Part shown: piece by piece, positions 28,516-56,540 of the stretch
How positions within the stretch are numbered: the stretch's first letter is position 1
How the letters are laid out: the number at the start of each line of letters is the position of its first letter
Source: Epithemia pelagica
Taxonomy: Eukaryota > Protista > Bacillariophyta
Reading direction: 5' to 3'
Assembly: GCA_946965045.2 (NCBI GenBank)
Contig: OX337237.1
Span: forward strand, 2,852,001 to 2,916,000
DNA length: 64,000 bases
Translations under genes and position numbers: made by a program
The notes under the pieces: model-generated
Told to the model about the DNA's origin: nothing
Databases searched by the model: none
The model's input: the letters and a program-made list of their open reading frames with translations, nothing else

Positions 28516-28740
28516 TCATATTACTTTGGAAAAAACATATAAGGTATTACTGACTCCTATTTCGTCAAACCACATCACACTCGGAAGGAAGCCATGGTAC
28601 GACCGGAATATCCCCAAAAGCGGGACAGCAATAATCGCAACATGGACAAACCACCGTGTCACAATCCGCAACAACACTGTTGTATGTCCTACCAACTGCC
28701 CCCCAAAGCGGCATCTCACCAGTCAAGTTCAAAATTGGTC
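28516..28740 (-). pseudogene. Spare, out-of-frame copy of the LRR C-terminal cap downstream of the receptor gene
   Basis: NLTGEMPLWGAVGRTYNSVVADCDTVVCPCCDYCCPAFGDIPVVP duplicates NLTGDMPLCDAVGRTYTNIVADCEMLVCTCCTSCC. Confidence 0.8.
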
Positions 28741-31493
28741 GCAATGTAGCCTTTGGGATGGGTATCCTGTGGGTTTCCCATAGCACCTTTCAAGCATCGA
28801 TCGAACCTGGTATCGTGATCGTTGTCAAAAAATGACGGAAACGTGCGACATTCGGAAGATTCAGGAAGAGACAAATATTCTGAACTCAAATACTCAGGAC
28901 AGCAACTTGTGCAACAAGTACAAACCAACATTTCACAATCAGCAACAATGTTGGTATAAGTTCTCCCAACTGCGTCACAGAGAGGCATGTCACCAGTCAG
29001 GTTGGTGTAAGGGACAGATAAACGTTTTAGGAACCGTAGTATGGCGAGAGAACCTGGTACGATGCCTTCCAACCTTGGATTCCTCGCCATAGTCAGAGTC
29101 GTCAGCGATACCATGTTTGAAATTTCATGAGGAATTGGACCTGATAGATCATTGGCCGAAAAATCCAGAAAACTCAGTCGCTTGAGTAGTCCAAAGTCAG
29201 TTGGAATGGTACCGTTCAATTGATTGGCCTCCAAAAGCAAAGTCTTGATGTTCGACAAACCTGAAACTTCGTCGGGGATGGGTCCCGAAAGATCGTTGGA
29301 ATGCAAACTCAGAAAGTTCAGTTGATTCAGATGTCCAATCTCAGTTGGAATTGTTCCCCAGAGAGCATCTTCCGAAAAACTCAACCAGACCAGTTGAGTC
29401 AGCTGACCGATGGTGGGAGGAATTGTTCCTGAAACATCGTTGTCATAGAAACTCAACCAGGTAAGTTGATTTAATTGTCCATAATCATTTGAGATGGTTC
29501 CGTTAAGTTGATTCCTCCCAAAATTCAGGCGTTTCAAGTTAGTGAATGTTACTTTGTCAGGGATAGGTCCTGAAAGATTGTTCTCATAAAAACTCAGCCA
29601 GGTCAGTTGATTCAGTTGTCCAAACTCAGATGGAATGGTGCCGCTGAATTGATTCTCCCCAAAGTCCAAAAGTAGGATGTTGGACAAATTCGAAACTTCG
29701 TCGGGGATAGGGCCTGAAAGATCGTTGTGATAAAAACTCGGCCAAGTCAGTTGATTCAGTTGTCCAAACTCAGAGGGGATGGTGCCGTTGAATTGATTCT
29801 CCCCCAACTGCAAACTTTCGAGGTTGGACAAATTTGAAACTTCGCCGGGGATAGGTCCTGAAAGATCGTTGTTATCAAAACTCAGCCAGGTCAGTTGATC
29901 CAGTTGTCCAAACTCAGATGGAATGGTGCCGTTGAATAAATTATCCCCAAAGTCCAAAGTTCGGATGTTGGACAAGTTTGAAACTTCGTCGGGGATAGGG
30001 CCTGTAAGATCATTGTTATAAAAATTCAGCCATGTCAGTTGATATAGGTTTGACAAAAAATATGGCACAGTTCCGGACAAGCCGTTGTCGCCTAAATCCA
30101 AGAGCAATAGTCGAGATAGGAGTCCCAGATCATTCGACGGCCGCCCTAGGATATTCTTGCCCCTAGCACGTAGCCTAACAACACGCAGAATCGTAGACTC
30201 TGTAGCATCGTCGTTCTTTGTAAAAGCCTCTTCTTGACACGAGACCATGGACCAGTCACACTCGTGGGCATCAGACAGCCAGTCGATCCGAGCATCCTCT
30301 CTCCATTTTTTTGGAACGGTATCTTGTAAGAACCATAATGTCGCTAGGGCGTATCGTTGCACCAATCGCTGTTGATCCAACTCAGTCTCTACTCCAAGTT
30401 GCGCTGGGTCGCCATCCAGGATCCAGGCCAAGGCCTTTTCCTCCAATGTTGCAGAACCTTTGGGCGCTGGAAAACGTAGGGGAGAAGGGGACGACGAAAG
30501 TGTCAGATTCCGCAGAAAAGATATTATATTCGCGGTGCGTGGATAGTTGGTCGGAGCCATAGATTGCGTGGGAGGATGGCTGGGTATAGTCGACGGATTC
30601 GAAGAGGGACCTCCAGTGGGTTGTGGCGAGATAGGTTTCTTTGACGGTTCCCAAGAAAAAACTATAGTGGGTTTTGGCAACATAATATCTCCTTCAGAAG
30701 GAGATATTGAAGGGGGAGATTGGAAGTTGCCATTCAACGCTGACGAAGTCGACGATTTGTTATCTCTTTGGTTCGTCAGAACAGGAACAACTGTCGCTAC
30801 AAGAATGATAGCCAACAATGCAATGAAAGCAACAGCAAAAGCATTCAAATGCCATCTATGGCGTGACTTGAACAAACCAACATCAATGCACAATCCGTTG
30901 TAAGTGTCATTATTGTTCAAGGTTTTGATGGAGGCCTCAAGATCCCTTTGCATGGCGCACTCAACCTGGTGATCATTCTTCTCTTCGTTCGACGAGACTT
31001 CCTCATCATAAACTGTGTCCTCCCACTTTCTTTCGTCCGGCTTCAGTGGACAATGGCCTCGCCAAATTGTCAAAAAGACATTGTTTTGTTCAGGTGTAGC
31101 GTTGTCACCAGACAGAAGTTGCCGTATCGTTGGATGAAGTGGATTGATGACAAACTGTTCGAGAGTCTGCCTGGGTCTGAACATGGTACAAAACTCTTTG
31201 CCTAAGTTCAAACTTTTATAAGCCGAGAGACTTTCACAAAGATGTGGATCCATGCCATCACAAAACACAATTCGAAGAATAAACCCCCCCTGTTCCGAAT
31301 CTCTTTTTCGGTACAACGCCGTATAAAGTTCTTTCAAACACCAGTCAGATTCGTGAAAGTATCTGGATAGAAATACAATGACAACCCGGCTCTTCCACAA
31401 GGCATGGCGAATCACATCTTCTTTGTCCAAATGGCCGAAGCCACGAGAATGCTCATTCATGGCTTCACAATCCACAAAGAACTTGTATCCATA
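28716..31493 (-). pseudogene. 3' part of a TIR-TIR-TM-LRR receptor (rest of TIR2, TM, stalk, ~15 LRRs, cap), cut off from its 5' part by a copia insertion
   Basis: YGYKFFVDCE...FLSRYFHESDWCLKELY; TM AFAVAFIALLAIILVATVVPVL (~30781-30846); LRRs in 48-aa units; joins 39697 through TSD CCATA. Confidence 0.9.
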
Positions 31494-32271
31494 TAGTAGA
31501 ATTCTTTCAAACTCATGGGGGATAATGCTCGGTAGAGCAGACAATCAGGTAGGTCACCAACCGATAGTAGTATCTCCACGGGTCAGAGATACAACCAAGT
31601 CGTAGTCTATCAAAAGGATAGTCGGGACACAAAAGAGGATGTGATAAATGGTGATATTGTTAGATTGTGTGTTGATTACTACGATAGGTCTACGTGAAAT
31701 TTTCGGTCCTGCCAAGGGTCATGAGTCATAGGTTCTTGGCGGCAACAGGTTTGGAATAGTTGGAGTCGATTCATGTGATGTATATGACATGTATATGTGG
31801 ACGGATAACATATACAGGGTCAACAGCTCTTGCTTTGGATTGGAATAGTTGTTTTCATGGCGCGCAGCTTGTTGACAATTTGGAGATTTTGGGAATGGAA
31901 ATATGGTCTCGCGTGATCGTGTGTCGTGCTTGGGATACTTAGACCGTTGGGACGGATAGATGCCAACAGCGCTCGGATGTCGCTTGGGCGCGCTCGATGA
32001 TTTCGGGCGCGTAGGCTTAGGGCGTTAGTATAATGTCCGAGCAACGGCCAAATTTACGTCCGTTGTAATACCGCACGACCCAGTTTAGTCTTGAGAGTGA
32101 GTTCGTCAATCTATTCTCCCTTTTCATGATTTGCGAAGAAATATAGGTCGATATAGCGCAAAGCTAGGGAACATAGCTCGGAGCCTAGATGGCATGATGC
32201 GATAGCACGAGGCTATGTGACATGGGGAATCGATGAGATGTAGAATCTAACCACCATAGACGGTGAGAATT

Positions 32272-35200
32272 CTAACACTCCCCACAACTCGTCATTTCAG
32301 CCTTGTCATCATTGGATTTGTTGAGGTCTTGAACTTCTCCTTTCCAAAACAACAATGGCTTGAGCATGGGCCAAATAGATACGAAATCCCAATGTTTGCT
32401 AAGGATATCGGCAGGGTTGGTCTTTCCATCTTTCCAGTAGAATGCAACATACTTTGCTGTGATGGCTTCATGAACTCGGTGGTATGACAGAAGATGGTGT
32501 CTCTTGGATAGTATGGAATGAGGAACGGTTGCATTGAGCACAACAGATCTGTTATCTCCGTACATGTAACTTCGCTCTCGGATAGGTACTCCAAGGTAGC
32601 GGAGAGAATGTCGTAATTCTGTAATCTGATCTATTGCTGTCCTTGCAGCCACAAACTCCGATCCATAGGTAGCAGTTTCCACCGTGCTCTGTCTCTTGCT
32701 GTACCAGTCAATAGGTGTTCCGTTCAACAAATGTAGAACAGCAGTGACGGATTTACCAGTGACTATGTCATGCATGAGATTGGCATCAACGTAATGAGTT
32801 GTGGTAACATAGAGGCCAAGAGGTGTTGGGCAGTCTTCAGGAATACGTTCACTTGCATTCGAATAGACAGTGCGAGTCCAATCAAATTCTTGGGTAGGAA
32901 GACTTGAATAATCAGGCTCTCCAATCCTAAATCTGATTGCGCCTTCTGGGAGATGTGCAAGGTATCCATAGATACGCTTGGCTCTATCAAGATGTCCTTT
33001 CCTCGGAGCAGCACGAAAGCGTGATAGTGTCATTGTAGTGGTGAAGACGTCGAAACGACCAATAGTGATCACCCATTGGAGTTGTCCAATCAGAGTTTGG
33101 AAATGGCTAGTACCTTCTTCATCAAGGAGCTCAGAATCATCCAATTCAGGATGGTCTCCACCAATAAGAGGTGTTTTGGCTTTCTTGGGTTTCTCCTTGA
33201 AGATTCGTTCGAAAGTGTCCATCATCTTACCAATGTAGCGTCTTGGATCTGCTACTAATGTTCCATCAGAATCCTTGGTGTAACAACATCCCAAGTGGAA
33301 ATCAATAGGTCCATCTCCTTTGAGTTTGAAGTTGTTGTCGGTCAAAACATCGAATAAGACATCATGCCAGCGTGCGCCTGATGACTTCAATCCATAAAGT
33401 GCCTTGTATATAATCAGGATGTGACCTTCTAATTCCTTGAATTCAGGTCCTGCGACAATGAAGATTTTCTCCCCTGTCAAGGCTTCCAGATATGCGTTTC
33501 CAATATCTGCTCCCCATATTTCCAAGTCATTCAAAGTACCCAGGAATAAGGCAATGCGGAGGTTGCGAATGGAAACAACACCTGAATAGATTGTCTCAAC
33601 AGGTTCTTTTGTGAGATGTCCATCTGCAACAAGTCTTGCTTTATGTCGTCCATCATGTTTTACGTCAAGACAAGATGTACACGTATCTTATGATATCCTT
33701 CAGGTGCATTGGATACTTTCCCTTTAATGAAGATGGCTTTCCCAAAATCCTTGAATGTCTTGTAGGACTGGATCTGTGACAATTCTAATTCTGTTGCATC
33801 CTGCCACTTTGTGTTGCCATGTTGTTTATCAAGAGCGGCAGCTTCCTCATAATTGTGTGGTACTTGGAATCCAAACTTATACTTGACGGAATGGTGAACT
33901 TGTTTAATCCTTGACTGTTTGGCTGCTCGAATGAGACGTTTGCTTGTTTTGACATAACGTTTCAAATGCTTCCATCCAGGTTCGTTGAGTAAACCATGTT
34001 TCTTTCCATAAATTGCTACAGTGATCGGATCATCATTGGCGATGAGTGATAAAGGTTCATAGGTAGTCTCCCCAGTTTCCCAATCAACAAGCAAATTATA
34101 TTTGCTCCCCTTGTAATCTGGATCAGTTGTGTTCAGTGGGCCTTGATGGGCAATGACGTCCCTGAACCTGAAAAGATTATCTCCAGAGGTTTGAGCTTGG
34201 ATATCTCGTTCGATATACTCCATGAGTTGATTATAGGATATCATCTCATCAACATCAGAATTTGTCTTTCGGTAGATGTACTTGACACGTTCTTCCTGTT
34301 TCGTTGCTTCTGCACGGTGTCGCTCCCCATTTTCTTCTGTGTCGCATAGGAATGTGCGTCCTATCATGTCGTCAAAATCGATCGTGGGCATTGGTTTGGA
34401 TGGATCTTCACTATCACTGCAAATGAAGACAGTGTCAGCTTGCTTATCATTGTCATCCTTCTCAGACGAATCCTCCCCTGAAGGTCGATCCACACGTAGG
34501 TTAGGTGTAGTGGATTCAACACGGCGAACGGCAGAACGGTAGATTATCTGGTTATCCTGGGTGAGAATCTTCCAAGTAAAAGAATCACCAACGTTGTGAG
34601 CAAAACCAACCCAGTGGCCAAGTTTCTCATCAGAAGAAGATGGATATGAACCAGAATTGGGTTCAGCGGGGTCGACACGGTAGTAAACTTCATCCCAGAA
34701 AGGAAAGAACAAGAGATGAGTAATGTCGGGTGGGCGTCCGGAGAGAGCCTCAAGAGGAGTGCGACCGGAATGGGTGGGTGATGATGTATGGTTCAATAAG
34801 TCACAGACATACTCAAGGCAAAGAAGCCAGGTGTTGGCAGGGCAACCAGTGGCATTCATGAGAGCGTTGGTCATACGTTTGACGGTCTGGTAACGGTTTT
34901 CAGCCTTATTCTGGTGTTGATGATAAGGTTCGGATCGATACTCCCCAATAAGCAAAGTGTGAAGAATGTCTTTGACCTTTTGAGAGATGAGAGATGAACC
35001 ACCATCACTGATAAGAGTCTCCATGGCACCACGAAACCGGATGTTGTCCTGAAGAGTATTGACAAACTGTTTGGTTGACTTGATCCCATAGATATCAGTA
35101 ACCAGAGTATCTCGACCAACAAAGATTTGTGCGACTTAACCGCCATGGTCAACAGCAGGGGTGTCGGAGAAAACCGAGTCAGTAGCAACGGGTTCATGAC

Positions 35201-37776
35201 GTCGAGGTATATTAAGGACCGGATTGCGAGCCTTGAAATGTTTCTTGAGGGTGTCGTGGTCAAAAGTAATGCTACCATTACGTGTAGTGTGCTTGAACGT
35301 ATCGGCAATAACATCTTCAGATTGCCAACCAAAGAATGGACGGAACTTCTTCCAGTCATACGCTTCCTGGTAACGACGGTGGACAGAGGCATGAAGTGTA
35401 GGATCATTACCTTCTGCGTCAGCATAGATAGAAAAGAAGGGTGCGTCGTCAGGTCCATGATCGTATGGGAGATCCAAAAGGAGATTGAGGTTACAAACAA
35501 CACGATCAGTGTACTCCCCATAGTTGTCATATGGATGGTTCGACATACTACCATCAGTCTTGACGTGTTTCCAATCAGGATCATTGTCAGAGGGTGTGGG
35601 AGAATACAAATGGTCCAGAACACCAGGATCCCATGTGTCGGGTGACGTGAAGATGATCTGAGGTAAGGTATTCATGTCATCGTCGCTGGGGATACCCAAG
35701 GAGTGGATGTAGGCTAACCCATCCTTGATGTGAAGGGGTATAGCACGACCATCAAGTGTAGTGATGCCTTGTTTACCATCAACTTTAACAGATTGGTCAT
35801 CAACAGCAAGTCCAAAATGCTCGAATTGACCAGGAGCATGGATAGATAAGCCCTTTCCATAATAAGCATATTCATTGAAGATACCGACACTAGGTCCATC
35901 ATTGGTCTCAAACTTTGCGGCACATGTGACGACAGGAAGTCCAGTAAGTTCATGGTTATAAATACCCACAATAGTGATATGGCGGCCAGTCTTAGAAAGG
36001 ATGCGCATGTCAGAACCAGCAAGTCCTCCATTAGCACCACGGTCAATCAATTGATTCCCTGGTAAAGTAGATTTCCTGGAAAACAAATAGCGTGGAAGAT
36101 GTCCTGCTTGTTTATGCATGTTGGCTTTGAAAGTAACCTTCTTTGCTCGCCTTGGACTTGGCGTTAGAAAGAACACTAGTCAGGTCAGTTGCCAGGTGAT
36201 TGATATCAGTCGTCATGGCTTGGTTGATAAATTGTGTAACCGGATCTGAATCATCTGGGTGCTCAGGGACTGCGCCAGGTGAGTCGTCATCAGATGCAAC
36301 TTGGTTGGGGTCAGGATCAGGTTCCGGATCAATGTTGAGGGCATGTGTTTGCACTTTCCTCGGTGTTGTTGATGAAGGTGCTTGAATCATCTTGTTATAC
36401 TCAATGATCAACTTGCGATCTTCTTCAGAAAGTTTGAACCATAGGTCACGCGGTAGACTAACCTTGGACGAAGAGGATGGAGATTCAGATGTCACTTTGG
36501 TGTTGTGGACATGATACTCCATATCATCTTGTGAGGTTATGTCAGCATCTGTATCTTGGCCATATAGTGATTCATGTTGTTTGACATGTCGACGGCGACT
36601 ATGAACAGATGACTGGGTTGCTTGATCATGGTCATAAGCTGCGTCTAAAAGGAGACGGAAGTATGATTGATAGCAAAGGGATTTTGCACCGGATTTGGTG
36701 TTCACCACATTATCCAAGATCTTGACTCGGCGGAGATCAGGTACCTTTTCTACAGCTTGCATGAGAAAGGTCATCCTGGTATGATCAGGGATGCGATCAG
36801 ATAACGTCACTAGATTGTCTAGCAGACGTAGCTGCTCTTGAAAGTGTAGAAGAAAGTGACGTGTTGTTCCGCGCCATGTGTCGTCAAGACGTAGATTGGA
36901 CATGCAGTTGGTTAAACGGAGGACTTCTCGTTTTGCTAGGTCGGATTCGGTATGCAAAGAGTGTAACTTCTGCAATACGGCATGTGCATCTTCATCATGT
37001 TCGTGTTCACGTACATAGGCTCGACCTTGGTCATTTTGAATGATACGGACAAGAACGGAGTAAAGAAATACTTGTTGCTCTTGAAAAAGTTCTTCGGCAT
37101 ACTCATCATCTTGGGGTGGTGTGTATTTGAAATTCAGAACGTTGGATAGGCCTTGGGCCTTAGCTGTAGTCTTGAATACACGCCAGAATGAATCGTAGTA
37201 TTGTTCATCCTTGAATACCTCGTACGCAGTCGCGTCGCGTTTAGTTCCCTTTCTGAATGCCGTAAGGTCTTGTTGAGACTGGGATGCGGCAGTAACTGTG
37301 CTGACAGATTTTGCAGATGACGGTGACTTCATTGGCGAGACTGGAACTTGGCTAGGTGGTCCCTTAGAGAAATCTGTGTTTATCCTCCAAGTGTTGAACT
37401 CTTTCCTCGTTAGGTTCATCCAGTCGCTATTGGATAGCTCGTCTTGAATTTCGTTGGTCTTGTATATGGCCCAATAAGCCAAGAGCTTGATCTGCTGTCT
37501 TGCGGGGCCTTGTAGATCATGTGTCTGTTTGTTGACCTTGTATTGGGTCAGTTCGTTCATGGATTCCTCGGTATTGGTTTGCATATACGAGATAACATGG
37601 GTAATGTTCTCAAAACCATGGTATTTCATCCACTTCATTAAGTAGTCGGCCCTTTCCTTGGTAAAGAATTGGCAGACAGTAAATATGATGTGGTCGAATA
37701 GGTCTGTGTTCGAGACATTGTCTTGGTTATCTTCTCCCTTAGGAGTCGTAGGTGTCTTGAGTGATTGAGGATCCAT
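32272..37776 (-). pseudogene. Copia gag-pol, broken (frameshifts, a stop, deletions including the RT YVDD region)
   Basis: Fragments 36112..37776, 35136..36176, 33660..35024, 32272..33534 align to the intact 43347..49034 protein; LTD-NNFKLK lacks ~50 aa containing YVDD; HRA-EATKQ lacks 11 aa. Confidence 0.9.
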
Positions 37777-38096
37777 GGTGTTATTTGGTTGGTTCGATGT
37801 TTATTTAATGTGCGGTATGATGTGGTTTATTTAATGTGTGATGTGATGTGAACCCGGATGTACCACGTGTGCCACGTATGTACCACGTATGTGATACCCG
37901 GATGTGTGTTGTGATGTGCGATTCCTGGAAATTTCCGTTGATTCCGACAAATTTTCGCCGAGTTTCAACAAATTTTCGCCGAATTTTTGCGATTTGGCGG
38001 GAATGTGTGGCGTGTTGTGCGACCAAGGGTACCCGGATGTGCGTTGAGTTTAAGTCTTGGAAAGGTTTTGAGAGGACGGGAGTTAACTATGAGTAA

Positions 38097-38876
38097 TTAA
38101 GCTTCGGTTTCCGATTCTCCACTCTCTGCCGAATAATCAGAGTCGTTTCCAGGCTCAGATGGGGCAGCACAAGCAACAGGAGAAGGGGTATTACCTTCAG
38201 CCAAGTGGTTCTCGGCCTCGGCACGCAAAGGGAAGATAGTTGCACGATGGTCCTCAATGGTATGGACCTCGTGGATGTAGGCAACGTAGTTATCTAGGCG
38301 TACAACGTTAGGAGGCAGAGGGCAAGTCGTCGTGTTCACGATGTAGATGGTATTGTAGTATCCAGTTGGGCGCTCGAAGGTTAGGAAGCGGAGGTGGACA
38401 GTACGGATAGGGTTGCCCGAGAGGGCGGCCAAGATGAGGCGATACCTCGGAGAGCGATGAAGTTGGTCGTTCAGACGTTCAATGTCTTCTTGGTCGACGA
38501 TGTGGGTCACCGATTGGAACTGGCGTTCGATCTGGGTCTCCCCACGGATGATCTCGGGATCGAAGGTCGAAGAAGTTGGTTGACGGAAGTACTTGATATG
38601 ATCAGCAATCAACCGGGTGGTACGACGGGATCGAGAAGGGACGAGCCGACGAGGCGGACTCGGGGGCCGAAGCAACGGCGCAGGGATCGGAGCGTGAGGC
38701 TGGGTTGGAGTCTCGAATGGGTTGCTGTTGGAACTGTCGACGGAGATGTTGACCGATGTGTTGGCTGCCTTCAGCGTCGGCACCAGTTCCCGCTGCACCA
38801 GGGTATCGGGCTGCCTGGAATGCAGGTTGGCTCGATAAATCTGTTGTACAGGAGTGATAAGCTCGTTAGTATCCAT
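38097..38876 (-). CDS. Extra 259-aa ORF of the copia element between 5' LTR and gag (unknown function)
   Basis: Same length and frame as 42273..43052 in copy 2 despite many substitutions. Confidence 0.7.
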   Translation of the reverse strand: MDTNELITPVQQIYRANLHSRQPDTLVQRELVPTLKAANTSVNISVDSSNSNPFETPTQPHAPIPAPLLRPPSPPRRLVPSRSRRTTRLIADHIKYFRQPTSSTFDPEIIRGETQIERQFQSVTHIVDQEDIERLNDQLHRSPRYRLILAALSGNPIRTVHLRFLTFERPTGYYNTIYIVNTTTCPLPPNVVRLDNYVAYIHEVHTIEDHRATIFPLRAEAENHLAEGNTPSPVACAAPSEPGNDSDYSAESGESETEA

Positions 38877-39696
38877 GAAACCACAAGGAAATAAGCTCTG
38901 AGACTGTTAATCTAGTAGAATTCTTTCAAACTCATGGGGGATAATGCTTGGTAGAGCAGACAATCAGGTAGGTCACCAACCGATAGTAGTATCTCCACGG
39001 GTCAGAGATACAACCAAGTCGTAGTCTATCAAAAGGATAGTCGGGACACAAAAGAGGATGTGATAAATGGTGATATTGTTAGATTGTGTGTTGATTACTA
39101 CGATAGGTCTACGTGAAATTTTCGGTCCTGCCAAGGGTCATGTGTCATAGGTTCTTGGCGGCAACAGGTTTGGAATAGTTGGAGTCGATTCATGTGATGT
39201 ATATGACGTGTATATGTGGACGGATAACATATACAGGGTCAACAGCTCTTGCTTTGGATTGGCATAGTTGTTTTCATGGCGCGCAGCTTGTTGACAATTT
39301 GGAGATTGTGGGAATGGAAATATGGTCTCGCGTGATTGTGTGTCGTGCTTGGGATACTTAGACCGTTGGGTCGGATAGATGCCAACAGCGCTCGGATGTC
39401 GCTTGGGCGCGCTCGATGATTTCGGGCGCGTAGGCTTAGGGCGTTAGTATAATGTCCGAGCAACGGCCAAATTTACGTCCGTTGTAATACCGCACGACCC
39501 AGTTTAGTCTTGAGAGTGAGTTCGTCAATCTATTCTCACTTTTCATGATTTGCGAAGAAATATAGGTCGATATAGCGCAAAGCTAGGGAACATAGCTCGG
39601 AGCCTAGATGGCATGATGCGATAGCACGAGGCTATGTGACATGGGGAATCGATGAGATGTAGAATCTAACCACCATAGACGGTGAGAATTCTAACA

Positions 39697-41000
39697 CCAT
39701 AGAGCTCTGTCAAAGTTCTTGCAAGGGGAACAACAAGGTCTCTCTTTGTCTCAGGACCTATATGACAGAGATAGCAATCTTCCCCTTCGTACTGATATCT
39801 ATCATCCTTCTTGTTGTTGAGGAAAACAAATTGGGAAAGAAGCTTCTCATCCTCCGATTCCAGCGCCTCGAGAAATGCTTTGCCCGTCAATTGCTGTAGC
39901 CGATTTTGGGGAGCCTTGGACTTCTGTTCTTGTAATTCATGATCCTGTATAGTTCCATCCTGCGTAATATCGTCTGGCTTAAGTGGACAATGGTCTCGCC
40001 AGGATGCCAAGAAGATCTCGCTTTCTTCCTGTTTTGCGTTGTCGCCAGAGAGAAGTTGACGTATCGTTGGATAAAGTGGATTGATGACGAACTGTTCAAG
40101 AGTCTGCCTGGGTCCAAACATGGTATAAAACTCTTTGCCTAGGTTCAGACCTGAATACGCCGAGAGACTTTCACAAAGATATGGATCCATGCCGTCACAA
40201 AATACAATTTGAACAATATACTCCCCCTGTGGCGAAACTCTTTTCCGGTACAAAGCTGTATAAAGCTCTTTCAAACACCACTTAGATTCGTGAAAGTATC
40301 TTGACAAAAATACAATGACAATCCGGCTCTTCCACAAGGCATGGCGAATCACATCTTCTTTGTCCAAATGGCCGAAGCCACGAGAATGCTCATTCACGGC
40401 TTCACAATCCACAAAGAACTTGTATCCGTAGAGCTCTGTCAAAGTTATTGCAAGGGGAACAACAAGGTCTCTCTTTGTGTCCGGACCTCTGTGACACAGA
40501 AAGCAGTCTTCCCCTTTATACTGATCTCGATCATCCTTCTTATTGTTGAGGAAAACAAATTTTGAAAGAAGATTTTCATCCTCCGATTCCAGCGCCTCGA
40601 GAAATGCTTTGCCCGTCAACCCTTGCAGCTGATTTTGGGGAGCCTCGGACTTGCCTTCTTCTAATGCATTATAGCTTGTGGGCGCTATGTTTATGGTCCA
40701 ACATCCAGAGAAGAGTTTGAAAAGTTTGATGATCTCAAATGAGTCGATTTTACTGGACGAATTCCAATCCCCATCAGTTGGAATATTTGAGTGAATATTA
40801 TTTTCTGTTTTGAATCTCTGTTCCGAACGCTTCAGAAGAACAATTTTCTCGGGAGCATCGGCGCGCCCGTTGAAAATTTCGTCTATTGATGGAATATCTA
40901 TGCTAACCTTATACCCGTAGACACAACAGAAAATAGTTCTACTCCTAGGAGTATAGTTATCAAATAGTGTACCTTTTTGGGAAGAGTGATACCAAAACAA
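39697..41000 (-). pseudogene. 5' part of the TIR-TIR-TM-LRR receptor (complete TIR1 plus start of TIR2)
   Basis: EDCFLCHRGPDTKRDLVVPLA...FLSRYFHESKWCLKELY, then a second EDCYLCHIGPETKRDLVVPLARTLTELYG that continues as YKFFVD at 31493; no in-frame ATG before the upstream stop, so the true start is unresolved. Confidence 0.85.
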
Positions 41001-42272
41001 GAGACTGTGAAGTGAACAACATCAGGGAAGATATCAACGACGCGAGCCGCAAGTCGATCCCTTAAAACGAACTATATCCGCAAGACAAGGGCACGCTGCC
41101 GATGGGGCGCGACGCAGACCCGCCATGGGCCATTCCGGCTGAGAACATGATTCCCATGGCCAAACCACGACCCAACTGCCAACCGAACGCCGATCCACCC
41201 CCGCCCATCGGTTGGAAACACATACAACGCACGGCGGCCACAACATGGACCATGGAATCTCTCCACGGTCTTCGAAAAAACAAACAAAACAAACAACGGC
41301 AGTTCTCACCCCTTTCAACCCGTCACCATGGTAAAACCCAGAGCCCGGAAAAAGCCAAAAACACGGAACCCAACGGATACCCCGACTCGCCGAACGTGCT
41401 ACGGAGTAAGGGCCCCAATCCCCCAAGCAGCCACCGATGCAGCAAACCAAACATGTTAGAATTCTCACCGTCTATGGTGGTTAGATTCTACATCTCATCG
41501 ATTCCCCATGTCACATAGCCTCGTGCTATCGCATCATGCCATCTAGCTTCGAGCTATGTTCCCTAGCTTCGCGCTATATCGACCTATATTTCTTCGCAAA
41601 TCATGAAAAGTGAGAATAGATTGACGAACTCACTCTCAAGACTAAACTGGGTCGTGCGGTATTACAACGGACATAAATTTGGCCGTTGCTCGGACATTAT
41701 ACTAACGCCCTAAGCGTACGCGCCCGAAATCATCGAGCGCGCCCAAGCGACATCCGAGCGCTATCGGCATCTATCCGATCCAACGGTCTAAGTATCCCAA
41801 GCACGACACACAATCACGCGAGACCATATTTCCATTCCCACAATCTCCAAATTGTCAACAAGCTGCGCGCCATGAAAACAACTATGCCAACCTAAAGCAA
41901 GAGCTGTTGACCCTGTATATGTTATCCGCCCACATATACATGTCATATACATCACATGAATCGACTCCAACTATTCCAAACCTGTTGCCGCCAAGAACAT
42001 ATGACACATGACCCTTGGCAGGACCGAAAATTTCACGTAGACCTATCGTAGTAATCAACACACAATCTAACAATATCACCATTTATCACATCCTCTTTTG
42101 TGTCCCGACTATCCTTCTGATAGACTTCGACTTGCTTGCTTCTCTGACCCTGAGAAGCTTGTATCGGTTGGTGACCTACCTGATTGTCTGCTCTACCGAG
42201 CATCAATGTCCCTACGATTCAGAAAGAATTGTAACAGATTAACAGTCTCAAAGCTTATTTCCTTGTGGTTTC

Positions 42273-43052
42273 ATGGATACTAACAAGATTATCACTCCTG
42301 TACGACAGATCTATCGAGCCAACCTGCATCCCGGGCAGCCCGATACCCTGGTGCAGCAGGAACTGGTGCCGACGCCGAAGGCAGCCAACACATCGGTCAA
42401 CATCTCCGTCGACAGTTCCAACAGCAACCCATTCGAGACTCCAACCCAGCCTCACGCTCCGATCCCTGCGCCGTTGCTTCGGCCCCCGAGTCCGCCTCGT
42501 CGGCTCGTCCCTTCTCGATCCCGTCGTACCACCCGGTTGATTGCTGATCATATCAAGTACTTCCGCCAACCAACTTGTTCGACCTTCGATCCCGAGATCA
42601 TCCGTGGGGAGACCCAGATCGAACGCCAGTTCCAATCGGTGACCCACATCGTCGACCAAGAAGACATTGACCGTCTGAACGACCAACTTCATCGCTCTCC
42701 GAGGCGTCGCCTCATCTTTGCCGCCCTCTCGGGCAACCCTATCCGTACTGTCCACCTCCGCTTCCTAACCTTCGAGCGCCCAACTGGATACTACAATACC
42801 ATCTACGTCGTGAACGCGACGACTTGCCCTTTGCCTCCTAACGTTGTACGCCTAGATAACTACGTTGCCTACATCCACGAGGTCCATACCATCGAGGACC
42901 ATCGTGCAACTATCTACCCTTTGCGTACCGAGGTCGAGAATCACCTGGCTGAAGGTGATACCCCTTCTTCTGTTGCTTGTGCTGCCCCATCTGAGCCTGG
43001 AAGCGACTCTGATCATTCGGAAGAGGGTGAGGATTCGGAGACCGAAGCTTAA
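42273..43052 (+). CDS. Extra 259-aa ORF of the copia element (unknown function)
   Basis: ATG ORF in sense orientation upstream of gag, Pro-rich middle and acidic tail; conserved in copy 1. Confidence 0.7.
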   Translation: MDTNKIITPVRQIYRANLHPGQPDTLVQQELVPTPKAANTSVNISVDSSNSNPFETPTQPHAPIPAPLLRPPSPPRRLVPSRSRRTTRLIADHIKYFRQPTCSTFDPEIIRGETQIERQFQSVTHIVDQEDIDRLNDQLHRSPRRRLIFAALSGNPIRTVHLRFLTFERPTGYYNTIYVVNATTCPLPPNVVRLDNYVAYIHEVHTIEDHRATIYPLRTEVENHLAEGDTPSSVACAAPSEPGSDSDHSEEGEDSETEA

Positions 43053-43346
43053 TTACTCATAGTTAACTCCCGTCCTCTCAAAACCTTTCCAAGACTTAAA
43101 CTCAACGCACATCCACACATTCCCGTCAAATCGCAAAAATTCGGCGAAAATTTGTTGAAACTCGGCGAAAATTTGTCGGAATCAACGGAAATTTCCAGGA
43201 GTCGCACATCACAACACACATCCGGGTATCACATACGTGGTACATACGTGGCACACGTGGTACATCCGGGTTCACATCACATCACACATTAAATAAACCA
43301 CATCACACCGCACATTAAATAAACATCGAACCAACCAAATAACACC

Positions 43347-46300
43347 ATGGATCCTCAATCACCCAAGACACCTACGACTCCTAAGGGAGAAGATAACCAA
43401 GACAATGTCTCGGACACAGACCTATTCGACCACATCATATTTACTGTCTGCCAATTCTTTACCAAGGAAAGGGCCGACTACTTAATGAAGTGGATGAAAT
43501 ACCATGGTTTTGAGAACATTACCCATGTTATCTCGTATATGCAAACTAATACCGAGGAATCCATGAAGGAACTGACACAATACAAGGTCAACAAACAGAC
43601 ACATGATCTACAAGGCCCCACAAGACAGCAGATCAAGCTCTTGGCTTATTGGGCCACATACAAGACCAATGAAATTCAAGACGAGCTATCCAATAGCGAC
43701 TGGATGAACCTAACGAGGAAAGAGTTCAACACTTGGAGGATCAACACAGATTTCTCTAAGGGACCACCTAGCCAAGTCCCAGTCTCGCCAATGAAGTCAC
43801 CGTCATCTGTGAAATCTGTCAGCACAGTTACTGCCGCATCCCAATCTCAACAAGACCTTACAGCATTCAGAAAGGGAACTAAGCGCGACGCAACTGCATA
43901 TGAGGTATTCAAGGATGAACGATACTACGATTCATTCTGGCGTGTATTCAAGACTACAGCTAAGGCTCAAGGCCTATCCAACGTTCTGAATTTCAAATAC
44001 ACACCACCCCATGATGATGAGTATGCCGAAGAACTTTTTCAAGAGCAACAAGTATTTCTTTACTCCGTTCTTGTCCGTATCATTCAGACTGACCAAGGTC
44101 GAGCCTATGTACGTGAACATGAACATGATGAAGATGCGCGTGCCGTATTGCAGAAGTTACACTCTTTGCATACCGAATCCGACCTAGCAAAGCGAGAAGT
44201 CCTCCGCTTAACCAACTACATTTCCAATCTACGTCTTGACGACACATGGCGCGGAACAACACGTCAATTTCTTCTACACTTTCAAGAGCAGCTACGTTTG
44301 CTAGACAATTTAGTGACATTGTCTGATCGCATCCCTGATCATACCAGGATGACCTTCCTCATGCAAGCTGTAGAAAAGGTACCTGATCTCCGCCGAGTCA
44401 AGATCTTGGATAATGTGGTGAACACCAAATCCGGTGCAAAATCCCTTTGCTATCAATCATACTTCCGTCTCCTTCTAGACGCAGCTTATGACCATGATCA
44501 AGCAACCCAGTCATCTGTTCATAGTCGCCGTCGACATGTCAAACAACATGAATCACTATATGGCCAAGATACAGATGCTGACATAACCTCACAAGATGAT
44601 ATGGAGTATCATGTCCACAACACCAAAGCGACATCTGAATCTCCATCCTCTTCGTCCAAGGTTAGTCTACCGCGTGACCTATGGTTCAAACTTTCTGAAG
44701 AAGATCGCAAGTTGATCATTGAGTATAACAAGATGATTCAAGCACCTTCATCAACAACACCGAGGAAAGTGCAAACACATGCCCTCGACATTGATCCGGA
44801 ACCTGATCCTGACCCCAACCAAGTTGCATCTGATGACGACTCACCTGGCGTAGTCCCTGAGCATTCAGATGATTCAGATCCGGTTACACAATTTATCAAC
44901 CAAGCCATGACGACTGATATCAATCACCCGGCAACTGACCTGACTAGTGTTCTTTCTAACGCCAAGTCCAAGACGAGCAAGAAGGTTACTTTCAAAGCCA
45001 ACATGCATAAACAAGCAGGACATGTTCCACGCTATCTGTTTTCCAGGAAATCTACTTTACCAGGGAATCAATTGATTGACCGTGGTGCTAATGGGGGACT
45101 TGCTGGTTCTGACATGCGCATCCTTTCTAAGACTGGCCGCCATATCACTATTGTGGGTATTGATAACCATGAACTTACTGGACTTCCTGTCGTCACATGT
45201 GCCGCAAAGTTTGAGACCAATGATGGACCTATTGTCGGCATCTTCAATGAATATGCTTATTATGGGAAGGGCTTATCTATCCATGCTCCTGGTCAATTCG
45301 AGCATTTCGGACTTGCTGTTGATGAACGATCTGTTAAAGTTGATGGTAAACAACGCATCACTACACTTGATGGTCGTGCCATACCCCTTCACATCAAGGA
45401 TGGGTTAGCCTACGTCCACTCCTTGGGTATCCCCAGCGACGATGACATGGATACCTTACCTCAGATCATCTTCACGTCACCCGACACATGGGATCCTGGT
45501 GTTCTGGACCATTCGTATTCTCCCACACCCTCTGACAATGATCCTGATTGGAAACACGTCAAGACTGATGGTAGTATGTCGAACCATCCATATGACAACT
45601 ATGGGGAGTACACTGATCGTGTTGTTTGTAACCTCAATCTCCTTTTGGATCTCCCATACGATCATGGACCTGACGACGCACCCTTCTTTTCTATCTATGC
45701 TGACGCAGAAGGTAATGATCCTACACTTCATGCCTCTGTCCACCGTCGTTACCAGGAAGCGTATGACTGGAAGAAGTTCCGTCCATTCTTTGGTTGGCAA
45801 TCTGAAGATGTTATTGCCGATACGTTCAAGCACACTACACGTAATGGTAGCATTACTTTTGACCACGACACCCTCAAGAAACATTTCAAGGCTCGCAATC
45901 CGGTCCTTAATATACCTCGACGCCATGAACCCGTTGCTACTGACTCGGTTTTCTCCGACACCCCTGCTGTTGACCATGGCGGTAAAGTCGCACAAATCTT
46001 TGTTGGTCGAGATACTCTGGTTACTGATATCTATGGGATCAAGTCAACCAAACAGTTTGTCAATACTCTTCAGGACAACATCCGGTTTCGTGGTGCCATG
46101 GAGACTCTTATCAGTGATGGTGGTTCATCTCTCATATCTCAAAAGGTTAAAGACATTCTTCGCACTTTGCTTATTGGGGAGTATCGATCCGAACCTTATC
46201 ATCAACACCAGAATAAGGCTGAAAACCGTTACCAGACCGTTAAACGTATGACCAACGCTCTCATGAATGCCACTGGTTGCCCTGCCAACACCTGGCTTCT

Positions 46301-49034
46301 TTGCCTTGAGTATGTCTGTGACTTATTGAACCATACGTCATCACCCACCCACTCCGGTCGCACTCCTCTTGAGGCTCTCTCCGGCCGCCCACCCGACATT
46401 ACTCATCTCTTGTTCTTTCCTTTCTGGGATGAGGTTTACTACCGTGTCGACCCCGCTGAACCCAATTCTGGTTCATATCCATCTTCTTCTGATGAGAAAC
46501 TTGGCCACTGGGTTGGTTTTGCTCACAACGTTGGTGATTCTTTTACTTGGAAGATTCTCACCCAGGATAACCAGATAATCTACCGTTCTGCCGTTCGCCG
46601 TGTTGAATCCACTACACCTAACCTACGTGTGGATCGACCTTCAGGGGAGGATTCGTCTGAGAAGGATGACAATGATAAGCAAGCTGACACTGTCTTCATT
46701 CGCAGTGATAGTGAAGATCCATCCAAACCAATGCCCACGATCGATTTTGACGACATGATAGGACGCACATTCCTATGCGACACAGAAGAAAATGGGGAGC
46801 GACACCGTGCACGTGTCATCAAACGAGTCATTGATCTTAATGAAGAAGCAACGAAACAGGAAGAACGTGTCAAGTACATCTACCGAAAGACAAATTCTGA
46901 TGTTGATGAGATGATATCCTATAATCAACTCATGGAGTATATCGAACGAGATAACCAAGCTCAAACCTCTGGAGATAATCTTTTCAGGTTCAGGGAAGTC
47001 ATTGCCCATCAAGGCCCACTGAACACAACTGATCCAGATTACAAGGGGAGCAAATATAATTTGCTTGTTGATTGGGAAACTGGGGAGACTACCTATGAAC
47101 CTTTATCACTCATCGCCAATGATGATCCGATCACTGTAGCAATTTATGGAAAGAAACATGATTTACTCAACGAACCTGGATGGAAGCATTTGAAACGTTA
47201 TGTCAAAACAAGCAAACGTCTCATTCGAGCAGCCAAACAGTCAAGGATTAAACAAGTTCACCATTCTGTCAAGTATAAGTTTGGATTCCAAGTACCACGC
47301 AATTATGAGGAAGCTGTCGCTCTTGATAAACAACATGGCAACACAAAGTGGCAAGATGCAACAGAATTAGAATTGTCACAGATCCAGTCCTACAAGACAT
47401 TCAAGGATTTTGGGAAAGCCATCTTCATTAAAGGGAAAGTATCCAATGCACCTGAAGGATATCATAAGATACGTGTACATCTTGTCTTTGACGTAAAACA
47501 TGATGGACGACATAAAGCAAGACTTGTCGCAGATGGACATCTCACAAAAGAACCTGTTGAGACAATCTATTCAGGTGTTGTTTCCATTCGCAACCTCCGC
47601 ATTGCCTTATTCCTGGGTACTTTGAATGACTTGGAAATATGGGGAGCAGATATTGGAAACGCATATCTGGAAGCCTTGACAGGGGAGAAAATTTTCATTG
47701 TCGCAGGACCTGAATTCAAGGAATTAGAAGGTCACATCCTGATTATATACAAGGCACTTTATGGATTGAAGTCATCAGGCGCACGCTGGCATGATGTCTT
47801 ATTCGATGTTTTGACAGACATGGGATTTTCACCAAGCAAAGCAGATCCGGATATCTGGATGAGGAAGGCACCTGGAGAAGACTGTTACGAATACATTGCC
47901 GTATACGTTGATGACTTAGCCATTATTTCTACTGATCCTGGGAATATCTGCAAGATCCTGAAGGAGAAATACAACTTCAAACTCAAAGGAGATGGACCTA
48001 TTGATTTTCACTTGGGATGTTGTTACACCAAGGATTCTGATGGAACATTAGTAGCAGATCCAAGACGCTACATTGGTAAGATGATGGACACTTTCGAACG
48101 AATCTTCAAGGAGAAACCCAAGAAAGCCAAAACACCTCTTATTGGTGGAGACCATCCTGAATTGGATGATTCTGAGCTCCTTGATGAAGAAGGTACTAGC
48201 CATTTCCAAACTCTGATTGGACAACTCCAATGGGTGATCACCATTGGTCGTTTCGACGTCTTCACCGCTACAATGACGCTATCACGCTTTCGTGCTGCTC
48301 CGAGGAAAGGACATCTTGATAGAGCCAAGCGTATCTATGGATACCTTGCACATCTCCCAGAAGGCGCAATCAGATTTAGGATTGGAGAGCCTGATTATTC
48401 AAGTCTTCCTACCCAAGAATTTGATTGGACTCGCACTGTCTATTCGAATGCAAGTGAACGTATTCCTGAAGATTGCCCAACACCTCTTGGCCGCTATGTT
48501 ACCACAACTCATTATGTTGATGCCAATCTCATGCATGACATAGTCACTGGTAAATCCGTCACTGCTGTTCTACATTTGTTGAACGGAACACCTATTGACT
48601 GGTACAGCAAGAGACAGAGCACGGTGGAAACTGCTACCTATGGATCCGAGTTTGTGGCTGCAAGGACAGCAATAGATCAGATTACAGAATTACGACATTC
48701 TCTCCGCTACCTTGGAGTACCTATCCGAGAGCAAAGTTACATGTACGGAGATAACAGATCTGTTGTGCTCAATGCAACCGTTCCTCATTCCATACTATCC
48801 AAGAGACACCATCTTCTGTCATACCACCGAGTTCGTGAAGCCATCGCAGCAAAGTATGTTGCATTCTACTGGAAAGATGGAAAGACCAACCCTGCCGATA
48901 TCCTTAGCAAACATTGGGATTTCGTATCTATTTGGCCCATGCTCAAGCCATTGTTGTTTTGGAAAGGAGAAGTTCAAGACCTCAACAAATCCAATGATGA
49001 CAAGGCTGAAACGACGAGTTGTGGGGAGTGTTAG
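43347..49034 (+). CDS. Copia Gag-Pol polyprotein, 1895 aa
   Basis: Protease IDRGANGGL; integrase SDTPAVD...LISDGG...SEPYHQHQNKAENRYQT; RT WGADIGNAYL, LYGLKSSG, YVDDL; RNase H YVDANL, ATYGSEFVAAR, GDNRSV, NPADILSK. Confidence 0.97.
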   Translation: MDPQSPKTPTTPKGEDNQDNVSDTDLFDHIIFTVCQFFTKERADYLMKWMKYHGFENITHVISYMQTNTEESMKELTQYKVNKQTHDLQGPTRQQIKLLAYWATYKTNEIQDELSNSDWMNLTRKEFNTWRINTDFSKGPPSQVPVSPMKSPSSVKSVSTVTAASQSQQDLTAFRKGTKRDATAYEVFKDERYYDSFWRVFKTTAKAQGLSNVLNFKYTPPHDDEYAEELFQEQQVFLYSVLVRIIQTDQGRAYVREHEHDEDARAVLQKLHSLHTESDLAKREVLRLTNYISNLRLDDTWRGTTRQFLLHFQEQLRLLDNLVTLSDRIPDHTRMTFLMQAVEKVPDLRRVKILDNVVNTKSGAKSLCYQSYFRLLLDAAYDHDQATQSSVHSRRRHVKQHESLYGQDTDADITSQDDMEYHVHNTKATSESPSSSSKVSLPRDLWFKLSEEDRKLIIEYNKMIQAPSSTTPRKVQTHALDIDPEPDPDPNQVASDDDSPGVVPEHSDDSDPVTQFINQAMTTDINHPATDLTSVLSNAKSKTSKKVTFKANMHKQAGHVPRYLFSRKSTLPGNQLIDRGANGGLAGSDMRILSKTGRHITIVGIDNHELTGLPVVTCAAKFETNDGPIVGIFNEYAYYGKGLSIHAPGQFEHFGLAVDERSVKVDGKQRITTLDGRAIPLHIKDGLAYVHSLGIPSDDDMDTLPQIIFTSPDTWDPGVLDHSYSPTPSDNDPDWKHVKTDGSMSNHPYDNYGEYTDRVVCNLNLLLDLPYDHGPDDAPFFSIYADAEGNDPTLHASVHRRYQEAYDWKKFRPFFGWQSEDVIADTFKHTTRNGSITFDHDTLKKHFKARNPVLNIPRRHEPVATDSVFSDTPAVDHGGKVAQIFVGRDTLVTDIYGIKSTKQFVNTLQDNIRFRGAMETLISDGGSSLISQKVKDILRTLLIGEYRSEPYHQHQNKAENRYQTVKRMTNALMNATGCPANTWLLCLEYVCDLLNHTSSPTHSGRTPLEALSGRPPDITHLLFFPFWDEVYYRVDPAEPNSGSYPSSSDEKLGHWVGFAHNVGDSFTWKILTQDNQIIYRSAVRRVESTTPNLRVDRPSGEDSSEKDDNDKQADTVFIRSDSEDPSKPMPTIDFDDMIGRTFLCDTEENGERHRARVIKRVIDLNEEATKQEERVKYIYRKTNSDVDEMISYNQLMEYIERDNQAQTSGDNLFRFREVIAHQGPLNTTDPDYKGSKYNLLVDWETGETTYEPLSLIANDDPITVAIYGKKHDLLNEPGWKHLKRYVKTSKRLIRAAKQSRIKQVHHSVKYKFGFQVPRNYEEAVALDKQHGNTKWQDATELELSQIQSYKTFKDFGKAIFIKGKVSNAPEGYHKIRVHLVFDVKHDGRHKARLVADGHLTKEPVETIYSGVVSIRNLRIALFLGTLNDLEIWGADIGNAYLEALTGEKIFIVAGPEFKELEGHILIIYKALYGLKSSGARWHDVLFDVLTDMGFSPSKADPDIWMRKAPGEDCYEYIAVYVDDLAIISTDPGNICKILKEKYNFKLKGDGPIDFHLGCCYTKDSDGTLVADPRRYIGKMMDTFERIFKEKPKKAKTPLIGGDHPELDDSELLDEEGTSHFQTLIGQLQWVITIGRFDVFTATMTLSRFRAAPRKGHLDRAKRIYGYLAHLPEGAIRFRIGEPDYSSLPTQEFDWTRTVYSNASERIPEDCPTPLGRYVTTTHYVDANLMHDIVTGKSVTAVLHLLNGTPIDWYSKRQSTVETATYGSEFVAARTAIDQITELRHSLRYLGVPIREQSYMYGDNRSVVLNATVPHSILSKRHHLLSYHRVREAIAAKYVAFYWKDGKTNPADILSKHWDFVSIWPMLKPLLFWKGEVQDLNKSNDDKAETTSCGEC

Positions 49035-49821
49035 AATTCTCACCGTCTATGGTGGTTAGATTCTACATCTCATCGATTCCCCACGTCACATAGCCTCGTG
49101 CTATCGCATCATGCCATCTAGCTTCGAGCTATGTTCCCTAGCTTCGCGCTATATCGACCTATATTTCTTCGCAAATCATGAAAAGTGAGAATAGATTGAC
49201 GAACTCACTCTCAAGACTAAACTGGGTCGTGCGGTATTACAACGGACATAAATTTGGCCGTTGCTCGGACATTATACTAACGCCCTAAGCGTACGCGCCC
49301 GAAATCATCGAGCGCGCCCAAGCGACATCCGAGCGCTATCGGCATCTATCCGATCCAACGGTCTAAGTATCCCAAGCACGACACACGATCACGCGAGACC
49401 ATATTTCCATTCCCACAATCTCCAAATTGTCAACAAGCTGCGCGCCATGAAAACAACTATGCCAACCCAAAGCAAGAGCTGTTGACCCTGTATATGTTAT
49501 CCGCCCACATATACATGTCATATACATCACATGAATCGACTCCAACTATTCCAAACCTGTTGCCGCCAAGAACATATGACACATGACCCTTGGCAGGACC
49601 GAACATTTCACGTAGACCTATCGTAGTAATCAACACACAATCTAACAATATCACCATTTATCACATCCTCTTTTGTGTCCCGACTATCCTTCTGATAGAC
49701 TTCGACTTGCTTGCTTCTCTGACCCTGAGAAGCTTGTATCGGTTGGTGACCTACCTGATTGTCTGCTCTACCGAGCATCAATGTCCCTACGATTCAGAAA
49801 GAATTGTAACAAAACAAGAGA

Positions 49822-55600: not shown

Positions 55601-56540
55601 CAAAAGCGATCGATCCAATGGGTGACCATCTGTACTCATGCACCTCTGCTTCCAAAACACCTCTATCCAATGCCATAAGAGACACACTCTACGACATTCT
55701 CCGCCAAATCGCTCCAGCAGCCGAAGCCGTCGACACTCCCCATGATGTCCACATCGAACCCCCAGGTTTGACACCACAACACCAAAGAAACATTAGACCA
55801 GCAGACGTCGGTATGCTCCTGTCCAAGCCGCACAAAAACTCACCGTTTCAATATGTCGCGATTGACATTACTATCCCACCTCCCCAACAACCCCAAACCA
55901 TTCTTGACCCGTCCGACCACAACACACTCGCCACTTTGGCATCCAGGACGCATCAAGAAGCGGCAAGGGCTAAGTTTTGCCGAGACCCCGAGACATCAAA
56001 ACACCTTCTCCACAACGGCATATCCCTACTACCTTTTACGGTAGACCATCTTGGAGCGCTTGGTTCATTCGCAGACCGTCTCCTTTTTCCATCAACTTAT
56101 CAACCACATCTGTTCTCAACGACACAACCACCCCCTTGGACCAACGCCTTCTTCGGAAAAGAAAAAGAAGCAAAGCACATCCTGCGGCATACAGACTCTT
56201 TCAAGAAGCGTCAAACGCACCAAGCAACCTCCTTACCGCCGCCAACAGCAAAACAAAAAAATTCTCCTACCCAGAAGCACATATCTACTCAATCGGGCAC
56301 TATGCAAAAGCCTCCCTTGGTCACGCAATCGTTTCTGCACTGGCAACCCATGCCAATAACAACATCGCCGCAATAGGACAACACCAAACAAAACGAAAAA
56401 CAAGAACCACTCAGTTGCAAAATCTGGCTACACCATGTTTTGCTCCGGTCACTCCCATCTACTCCCCCGTCCCTCTGGCACAGTTCCTTAGTGTCACGGA
56501 CGAAACACCCCTCCTTTGCGAACCCTGTGCAACCGCTTAG
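52638..56540 (+). pseudogene. LINE ORF2: C2H2 fingers + reverse transcriptase + CCHC + restriction-like endonuclease, with frameshifts near both ends
   Basis: CPVPDC...LKQHLITEH and CPTC...HIRKHVTKKH; RT RSIGIG, GQYGI, LDLVNMFN, GFPQGCPLSP, MDD, RFLGQPIG; CRC...DHLYSC; RPADV...AIDITIP. Confidence 0.85.

Follow-up and report, generated by a model that had tools for sequence, protein, structure and literature searches.

A diatom receptor gene with two TIR units, split by a Copia-type retrotransposon in Epithemia pelagica

A 64,000-nucleotide stretch of the genome of the diatom Epithemia pelagica (assembly GCA_946965045.2, contig OX337237.1, positions 2,852,001 to 2,916,000; hereafter the window, with positions counted from its first letter) carries two minus-strand open reading frames (ORFs), 39666..41000 and 28716..31544, on either side of a long terminal repeat (LTR) retrotransposon that we call element A. 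Between them these ORFs encode TIR domains, a membrane helix and leucine-rich repeats (LRRs). The locus therefore raises the question of whether a membrane receptor had here come to carry two TIRs in a single chain, how such a form arose and what became of it. The two ORFs were found to be halves of one gene, and we consider it probable that a tandem in-frame duplication gave rise to a TIR-TIR-transmembrane (TM)-LRR protein that was long constrained and was later lost in both haplotypes by independent lesions.

Two TIR units in one interrupted gene

The features of the locus are listed below from the 5′ end of the gene, followed by a second retrotransposon upstream of it (element B); P0121 is an allele with an empty insertion site, described in the next section, and TSD denotes a target-site duplication.

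40702..40704, minus strand: ATG whose homologue is the initiator in the empty-site allele; not in frame here (reads MLDHKHSAHKL-stop)
39933..40661, minus strand: unit 1, pre-TIR helices and TIR1, 243 codons (Pfam TIR 2e-10; AF2; Foldseek)
39697..39932, minus strand: first part of unit 2: linker, pre-TIR motif, then TIR2 through strand A and helix A to ...TELY and two nucleotides of a Gly codon (aligns without gaps to unit 1, 243 codons away)
39697..39701, no strand: TSD CCATA, copy 2, flanking element A
31494..39696, minus strand: element A, a defective Copia-type LTR retrotransposon of 8,203 bp in the orientation of the gene (LTRs, TSD)
31489..31493, no strand: TSD CCATA, copy 1, flanking element A
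31032..31488, minus strand: second part of unit 2, the remainder of TIR2, which opens with strand B (YKFFVDCE), runs to HCPLKPDE and has WCLKELY (Pfam TIR 7.5e-7, 29.5 bits; gapless against unit 1)
31284..31290, minus strand: G7 homopolymer within TIR2, the frameshift site of the other haplotype (+2 frame reads GGVYSSNCVL-stop, matching the tail of P0121)
30777..30848, minus strand: single transmembrane helix (Kyte-Doolittle 19-residue mean 3.0)
28716..30776, minus strand: predicted ectodomain with a Ser/Pro stalk, QRYALATLWF cap, about 13-15 LRRs, Cys-rich tail and stop (LRR_14 7.9e-29, LRR_8 1.3e-22)
41454..49811, plus strand: element B, inverted, 750 bp upstream of the ATG (TSD AAACA, LTRs, intact polyprotein)

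The upstream ORF (39666..41000) holds a full TIR (Pfam PF01582, 2e-10) followed by a second copy of the pre-TIR motif, while the downstream ORF (28716..31544) opens in the middle of a TIR (7.5e-7) and continues into the membrane helix and plant-type LRRs (LRR_14, 7.9e-29). The Pfam TIR scores of the two pieces, 41.2 bits upstream and 29.5 bits downstream, both exceed the cut-off of 21.3. Element A, which separates them, is bounded by LTRs of 784 bp each (31494-32277 and 38913-39696; 8 mismatches, 98.98% identical), ends in TG...TA and is flanked on both sides by CCATA (31489-31493 and 39697-39701), a 5-bp target duplication. The Tyr of ...TELY is encoded by 39701-39699. The codon after it has 39698 and 39697 as its first two positions, and in the downstream frame 31488 is a third position. 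As these codon phases match, excision of element A together with one CCATA gives GGA (Gly) and then YKFFVDCE in frame, exactly as the original prediction had claimed for removal of 31494..39696 and one CCATA. The restored junction (...TELY-G-YKFFVDCE...) reproduces the motif of unit 1 at the equivalent place, TELYGYKFFVDCE, and in TIR2 the insertion point comes after helix A and before strand B. Continuity was established by this codon arithmetic and by a natural allele; the pieces themselves were searched separately, as the joined sequence has no reference.

The two pre-TIR and TIR units repeat without gaps at an exact period of 243 codons, sharing 88% nucleotide identity and 192 of 230 amino acids, and over its first part (39697..39932) unit 2 is 87% identical in DNA to 40426-40672. 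Both carry the pre-TIR motif LTGKAFLEALESED and WCLKELY and both match Pfam TIR, which bears out the two repeated units that had been proposed. Counted from the start of P0121 to the stop codon of the window copy, the reconstructed ancestral protein comprises about 1,257 amino acids and is made up of two 243-residue units followed by a single membrane helix, the stalk, LRRs of the plant type and, last, the Cys-rich tail. The hydrophobic peak at 30777-30848 is the sole one of its kind, with none in the upstream piece, and has basic residues (KSRHR) on its N-terminal side. The LRRs are of the plant type, with about 13-15 repeats of 24 residues each, and the layout of the ectodomain matches that of intact paralogs.

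An AF2 model of unit 1 (pLDDT 88.7, pTM 0.88) showed the alternating strands and helices of a flavodoxin-like fold, with three short pre-TIR helices ahead of the TIR core and two extra C-terminal helices behind it. When this model was compared with known structures by Foldseek, the plant TIRs RUN1, L6, Roq1 and RPP1 came out on top (probability 1.00, TM scores 0.4-0.58). Using phmmer, SKWCLKEL of unit 1 aligned with SKWCLMEL of L6 and STWCLEEL of Roq1 in helix C; the counterpart in unit 2, SDWCLKEL, keeps the Glu. We take this helix-C Glu to be the catalytic residue of NADase-type TIRs, as in plant and bacterial proteins and SARM1.

The divergence of the two units was then used to estimate selection, with codon columns pooled over the two segments, each aligned on its own, and the junction codon left out. 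Non-synonymous divergence (dN) was 0.090 and synonymous divergence (dS) 0.311, a dN/dS of 0.29 (bootstrap 95% interval 0.17-0.45), and only 0.8% of replicates reached 0.5 or more, the value near which one dead and one perfectly conserved copy are expected to fall. Differences between the units numbered 26, 18 and 39 at the first, second and third codon positions, an excess at the third, and derived residues at family-conserved sites, judged against six paralogs, amounted to about six in each unit, a symmetric pattern. The low dN/dS, the symmetric derived changes and the retained Glu of WCLKEL together argue that both units were constrained long after the duplication. Each of the five paralogous loci in the genome gave one match to the unit, and two units were seen in no genome paralog and, P0121 excepted, in no close family representative among the 1.84 billion proteins searched; the duplication is thus lineage-specific.

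An empty-site allele and the loss of the gene

An exhaustive search of 1.84 billion protein representatives, with unit 1 (39969-40646, minus strand) as the query, retrieved P0121, a 415-residue protein from a public ENA assembly that is 94% identical to the query in two matched stretches. P0121 runs ...LARTLTELYGYKFFVDREAVNEHS... uninterrupted through the insertion site in a single ORF and matches Pfam TIR in 2 stretches (84.9 bits, 7.9e-24). The uninterrupted allele that the original prediction had suggested looking for thus exists, with an empty site and with a single ORF that spans TIR1 and the greater part of TIR2, and the prediction survives the condition that was to refute it, an empty-site allele that fails to encode both TIRs together. 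It lies on an ENA contig of 2,059,682 bp that also bears alleles of neighbouring genes of the cluster (P0001, P0002 and P0003). P0215 and P0216, identical to the two window pieces, are encoded on a further ENA contig, of 775,818 bp; P0215 includes nine residues read from the LTR, with the flank read-through (..TELYGVRILTVYGG) exactly as in the window. As P0121 is free of the element whereas P0215 and P0216 are split by it, the sequenced organism appears to be heterozygous for the insertion. In the present assembly, a search for the empty site matched the locus and its internal repeat alone, so the assembly holds one haplotype here. A word-index search with the 923-residue downstream piece returned no near-identical protein, a result due to the length window of that search and not to absence: the allele fragments measure 276 and 151 residues, and a 914-residue twin sits in a cluster with a 276-residue representative.

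The other haplotype is itself in fragments, at least P0121, P0130 and P0217. P0121 has a poly-Gly run near its end and from there on reads the window sequence in the +2 frame, the break lying exactly at the G7 run 31284..31290, while P0130 stops where the window copy has TGG and P0217 where it has GGA. Its lesions are thus a frameshift at the G-run of TIR2 and premature ends, of which there are at least two. Those of the window haplotype are different: element A in TIR2, an out-of-frame start, and element B 750 bp upstream. An intact gene would have an in-frame ATG and an uninterrupted ORF, and the window copy has neither.

With regard to the start, no in-frame ATG was found ahead of TIR1 in the window haplotype, a defect that the original prediction does not mention. 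The single nearby ATG (40704) lies 19 nucleotides before the Ala codon, against 12 in P0121, a net gain of 7 nucleotides, and opens an ORF of 11 codons. The start of P0121 (MGNTAPTSY.../MGNT..ALEEG) resembles that of a paralog (MENTPDD..ALEEQ), which is an ATG. When an upstream start or exon was sought, all three frames of 41001-41453 proved to bear stops, and beyond element B, at 49817-51600, the sequence is G/T-rich and looks non-coding on the gene strand. An ATG at the edge of element B was rejected as a product of the insertion junction. An upstream intron in the window gene is possible; all paralogs are intronless. Against the back-translated start of P0121, the interval from the ATG to the Ala codon in 40685-40704 (minus strand) seems to be longer by a TT and a CCATA. 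The latter has the same letters as the target duplication of element A, in a comparison with inferred DNA in which coincidence is possible.

As far as its sequence can tell, the gene is a pseudogene in both known haplotypes, by independent lesions. No lesion is common to the two, which means that their common ancestor was intact. The claim of a tandem TIR-TIR-TM-LRR receptor accordingly holds for the ancestral gene and fails for a working receptor, broken as it is in both known haplotypes. Amino acid divergence between the haplotypes was considered as a signal of relaxed constraint and rejected: intact neighbouring genes, at 96.8-99.0% identity, are just as divergent as this one, at 96.7-99.3%, which makes the measure uninformative on this point.

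Element A has the paired LTRs and 5-bp TSD of a Ty1/Copia element, the third hallmark, an RVT_2 reverse transcriptase, being provided through its sister element B (88.6 bits; element A itself scored 28.3, below the cut-off of 31.6). Element B is flanked by the TSD AAACA (41449-41453 and 49812-49816), has LTRs that are 99.49% identical, ends in TG...CA and encodes an intact polyprotein of 1,895 residues (43347-49034, RVT_2 6e-25), so that it is seemingly an autonomous copy of the same Copia-type family. The polyprotein of element A shifts frame twice and the element is about 150 bp shorter, yet it is 97-99% identical to element B, which indicates that a defective copy was mobilised recently. 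This family is abundant in the genome (40 scored LTR copies at 95-97% identity, from 569 candidates) and is recently active. The insertion of a retrotransposon is in itself ordinary. If neutral rates are similar, element A would have inserted later than the duplication by a factor of about thirty, the LTRs differing by 1.0% and the units by a dS of 0.31.

Origin and fate of the two-TIR form

In our account the locus belongs to a clustered 'reversed' family with a cytosolic N-terminal pre-TIR and TIR module, a TM helix and extracellular LRRs, and in this member a 729-bp segment, nearly the whole cytosolic module, was duplicated in tandem and in frame. Both TIR copies then remained under purifying selection with the NADase-type glutamate kept, and the pattern of substitution suggests that a protein with both TIRs was in all likelihood expressed and useful. 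As a likely mechanism, ligand binding would cluster the LRR ectodomains and so gather the cytosolic TIRs for NAD+ cleavage or for scaffolded signalling. TIR NADases are activated by self-association, and TIR domains act only when brought together, which would make the number of TIRs per chain a natural knob for tuning sensitivity; with two on each chain, fewer chains should be needed for an active TIR oligomer. The original prediction offered the conjecture that the duplication may pre-organise TIR oligomers or diversify their products. Much later, a defective Copia-type element entered TIR2 of the window haplotype, and the other haplotype acquired its separate lesions. Such a pattern of loss is typical of birth-and-death turnover in an immune-receptor-like cluster.

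Several points weigh against this account. The start of the empty-site allele, the length of its G-run and the stops of the other haplotype were all inferred from prokaryote-style gene calls, in which alternative starts are printed as M (P0215 is an example), and the long G-run of P0121 could be an assembly artefact. A pairwise dN/dS averages both branches, so that mild relaxation of one copy may be hidden in it. The two-TIR form may also have been dispensable or costly, as its independent loss in both haplotypes might indicate. An extension of the latter thought takes the two-TIR form for an adaptive innovation and the independent knock-outs for the price of an over-sensitive, auto-active receptor, not for mere drift. 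Active plant TIR assemblies contain four TIRs, and on this account a receptor dimer would supply four, with less clustering needed for signalling; we regard it as rather unlikely.

Could there instead have been two genes, a soluble TIR-only gene made of unit 1 lying upstream of an ordinary single-TIR receptor, through a gene duplication and not an intragenic one? TIR-only proteins of the family do exist in databases (e.g. P0122, P0126 and P0129), and the duplicated segment begins near the usual start codon of the family. Yet no stop lies between the units in either haplotype, the window ORF and P0121 both running through. The length of the repeat divides exactly by three (243 codons), and the leader of unit 2 lacks a Met, the first in-frame one past unit 1 coming after strand B of TIR2, where the other haplotype has Val. 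This arrangement is accordingly quite improbable. A form that was dead from the outset and slowly decayed would suit the several breaks in each haplotype and a neighbourhood rich in transposons and broken receptor copies. It is difficult to reconcile with a dN/dS of 0.29 over a dS of 0.31, whose upper bound is 0.45, with the third-position excess, or with departures from family-conserved residues that are few and symmetric. Some 1,250 codons, moreover, are still open in the window haplotype once the insertion is set aside, and the absence of a shared lesion points to an intact common ancestor; we therefore hold a stillborn gene to be improbable. Finally, repeats and transposons are classic sources of misassembly and the poly-G of P0121 is suspicious, so that the tandem repeat or the insertion might be an assembly artefact. 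The units are 12% diverged, however, and are neither a collapsed nor an expanded identical repeat; the tandem arrangement is found on two separate ENA contigs as well as here, the 5-bp TSD is perfect, and the read-through TELYGVRILTVYGG is repeated exactly in P0215. An artefact is thus hardly credible.

Intragenic duplication, long constraint and late double loss, our preferred reading, would make this locus a natural case outside plants and animals in which a membrane LRR receptor doubled its TIR, both copies stayed long under selection and the gene was lost twice independently. The weight of the case is limited: it concerns a single locus from a single species, inactive in each known haplotype, in a family whose function is putative. 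Adjacent single-TIR paralogs and a two-TIR gene with nearly intact parts provide a matched set for addressing the role of a second TIR. The locus also shows an active Copia family in the heterozygous state, present on one haplotype and absent from the other, within a candidate diatom immune-gene cluster.

The receptor family, its surroundings and known systems

The window gene has the order of the diatom reversed TIR-TM-LRR family, is collinear with its paralogs and has a continuous ORF once element A is discounted. More than ten full-length genes for silicon transporters are present in the genome, in keeping with its diatom origin. Single-TIR paralogs lie in the same cluster (G000 C10 2840597-2851132; also P0001, P0002 and P0004). 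They share with it the LTxxxFLxAxExxD motif, WCLxELY, a single TM helix, the Ser/Pro stalk, the QRYALATLWF cap, plant-type LRRs, the Cys-rich tail ADC..C.CC..CC and the lack of introns, and are 50-58% identical to it in the TIR region. They differ in having one TIR module and an in-frame ATG, where the window gene has two modules in tandem and lacks such an ATG.

Two further receptors were found in the window. The single-TIR copy at 1143-4279 is also broken, while P0001 (999 residues, other haplotype) is nearly identical to it and open through TIR, TM and LRRs, ending before the Cys-rich tail; this single-TIR gene is therefore also heterozygous for inactivation. The third receptor (61072-63000, minus strand) is a frameshifted remnant, with a TM helix near 62800 in one frame and its stalk and LRRs in 61731-62912 and 61072-61734, and no TIR was found upstream of it inside the window. 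A database protein, P0124 (264 residues), is near-identical to it in TM and stalk and does carry a TIR. The proposed series of zero, one and two TIRs among the receptors of the window can be read from these genes, but reflects decay in part, its zero-TIR member being the frameshifted copy whose relative P0124 keeps a TIR.

Elsewhere in the family, an 898-residue paralog (L004 6901-9597; G000 C10 2844901-2847597) contains an in-frame tandem repeat of six residues, LWKCRV twice, within its TIR. Its allele in the other haplotype, P0003 (758 residues), starts at this LWKCRV repeat with an unrelated N-terminus and has apparently lost the beginning of the TIR. In P0123 and P0125, proteins of 796-1,331 residues, the pre-TIR and TIR module (38-46% identical) is fused to NB-ARC and TPR repeats, so the module is common to membrane receptors and NLR-like proteins. 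The receptor genes occupy a transposon-rich neighbourhood. A DDE_Tnp_4 transposase ORF lies at 8708-9769, and the stretch 50000-56400 is strongly skewed and A/C-rich (AT skew up to 0.40, GC skew -0.3), with an ORF of 1,095 residues (53089-56376) that gives a weak RVT_1 match.

Among known systems, diatom Ty1/Copia retrotransposons share LTRs, a 5-bp TSD and an RVT_2 reverse transcriptase with elements A and B, element A differing in its TG...TA ends, in place of TG...CA, and in being coding-defective. Animal Toll-like receptors likewise combine an LRR ectodomain, one TM helix and a cytosolic TIR. Their order of N-terminal LRRs, TM and C-terminal TIR is, however, reversed in the window gene, which has its TIR first, no expected signal peptide, plant-type LRRs of 24 residues and the plant/bacterial NADase glutamate; it does not belong among the Toll-like receptors. 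Diatom LRR receptors were described in a 2010 survey as being without attached functional domains (PMC2939053). Tandem TIRs are found in the mollusc Toll-2 receptors, where stronger signalling was reported for the two-TIR form (PMC4929906). As in the window gene, an extra TIR stands beside the original one in a single-pass LRR receptor (PMC4929906). The mollusc proteins nevertheless have the order LRR-TM-TIR-TIR, with C-terminal TIRs of the animal scaffold type, and belong to an unrelated lineage; the sequence comparison extends to the shared domain. Plant multi-TIR proteins (TIRx3-NB-ARC P0139; TIRx2-LRR P0137 and P0140) and Dictyostelium TirE, in which tandem TIRs have been described (bioRxiv 10.64898/2026.04.30.722052), carry two or three TIRs per chain, as here, and it is to plant TIRs that the fold of unit 1 is nearest by Foldseek. 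These proteins are soluble and intracellular, have neither membrane span nor ectodomain, and are distant in sequence (E 1e-9 to 1e-15). Multi-TIR proteins are thus already known, and the window gene is a two-TIR variant of the diatom receptor family.

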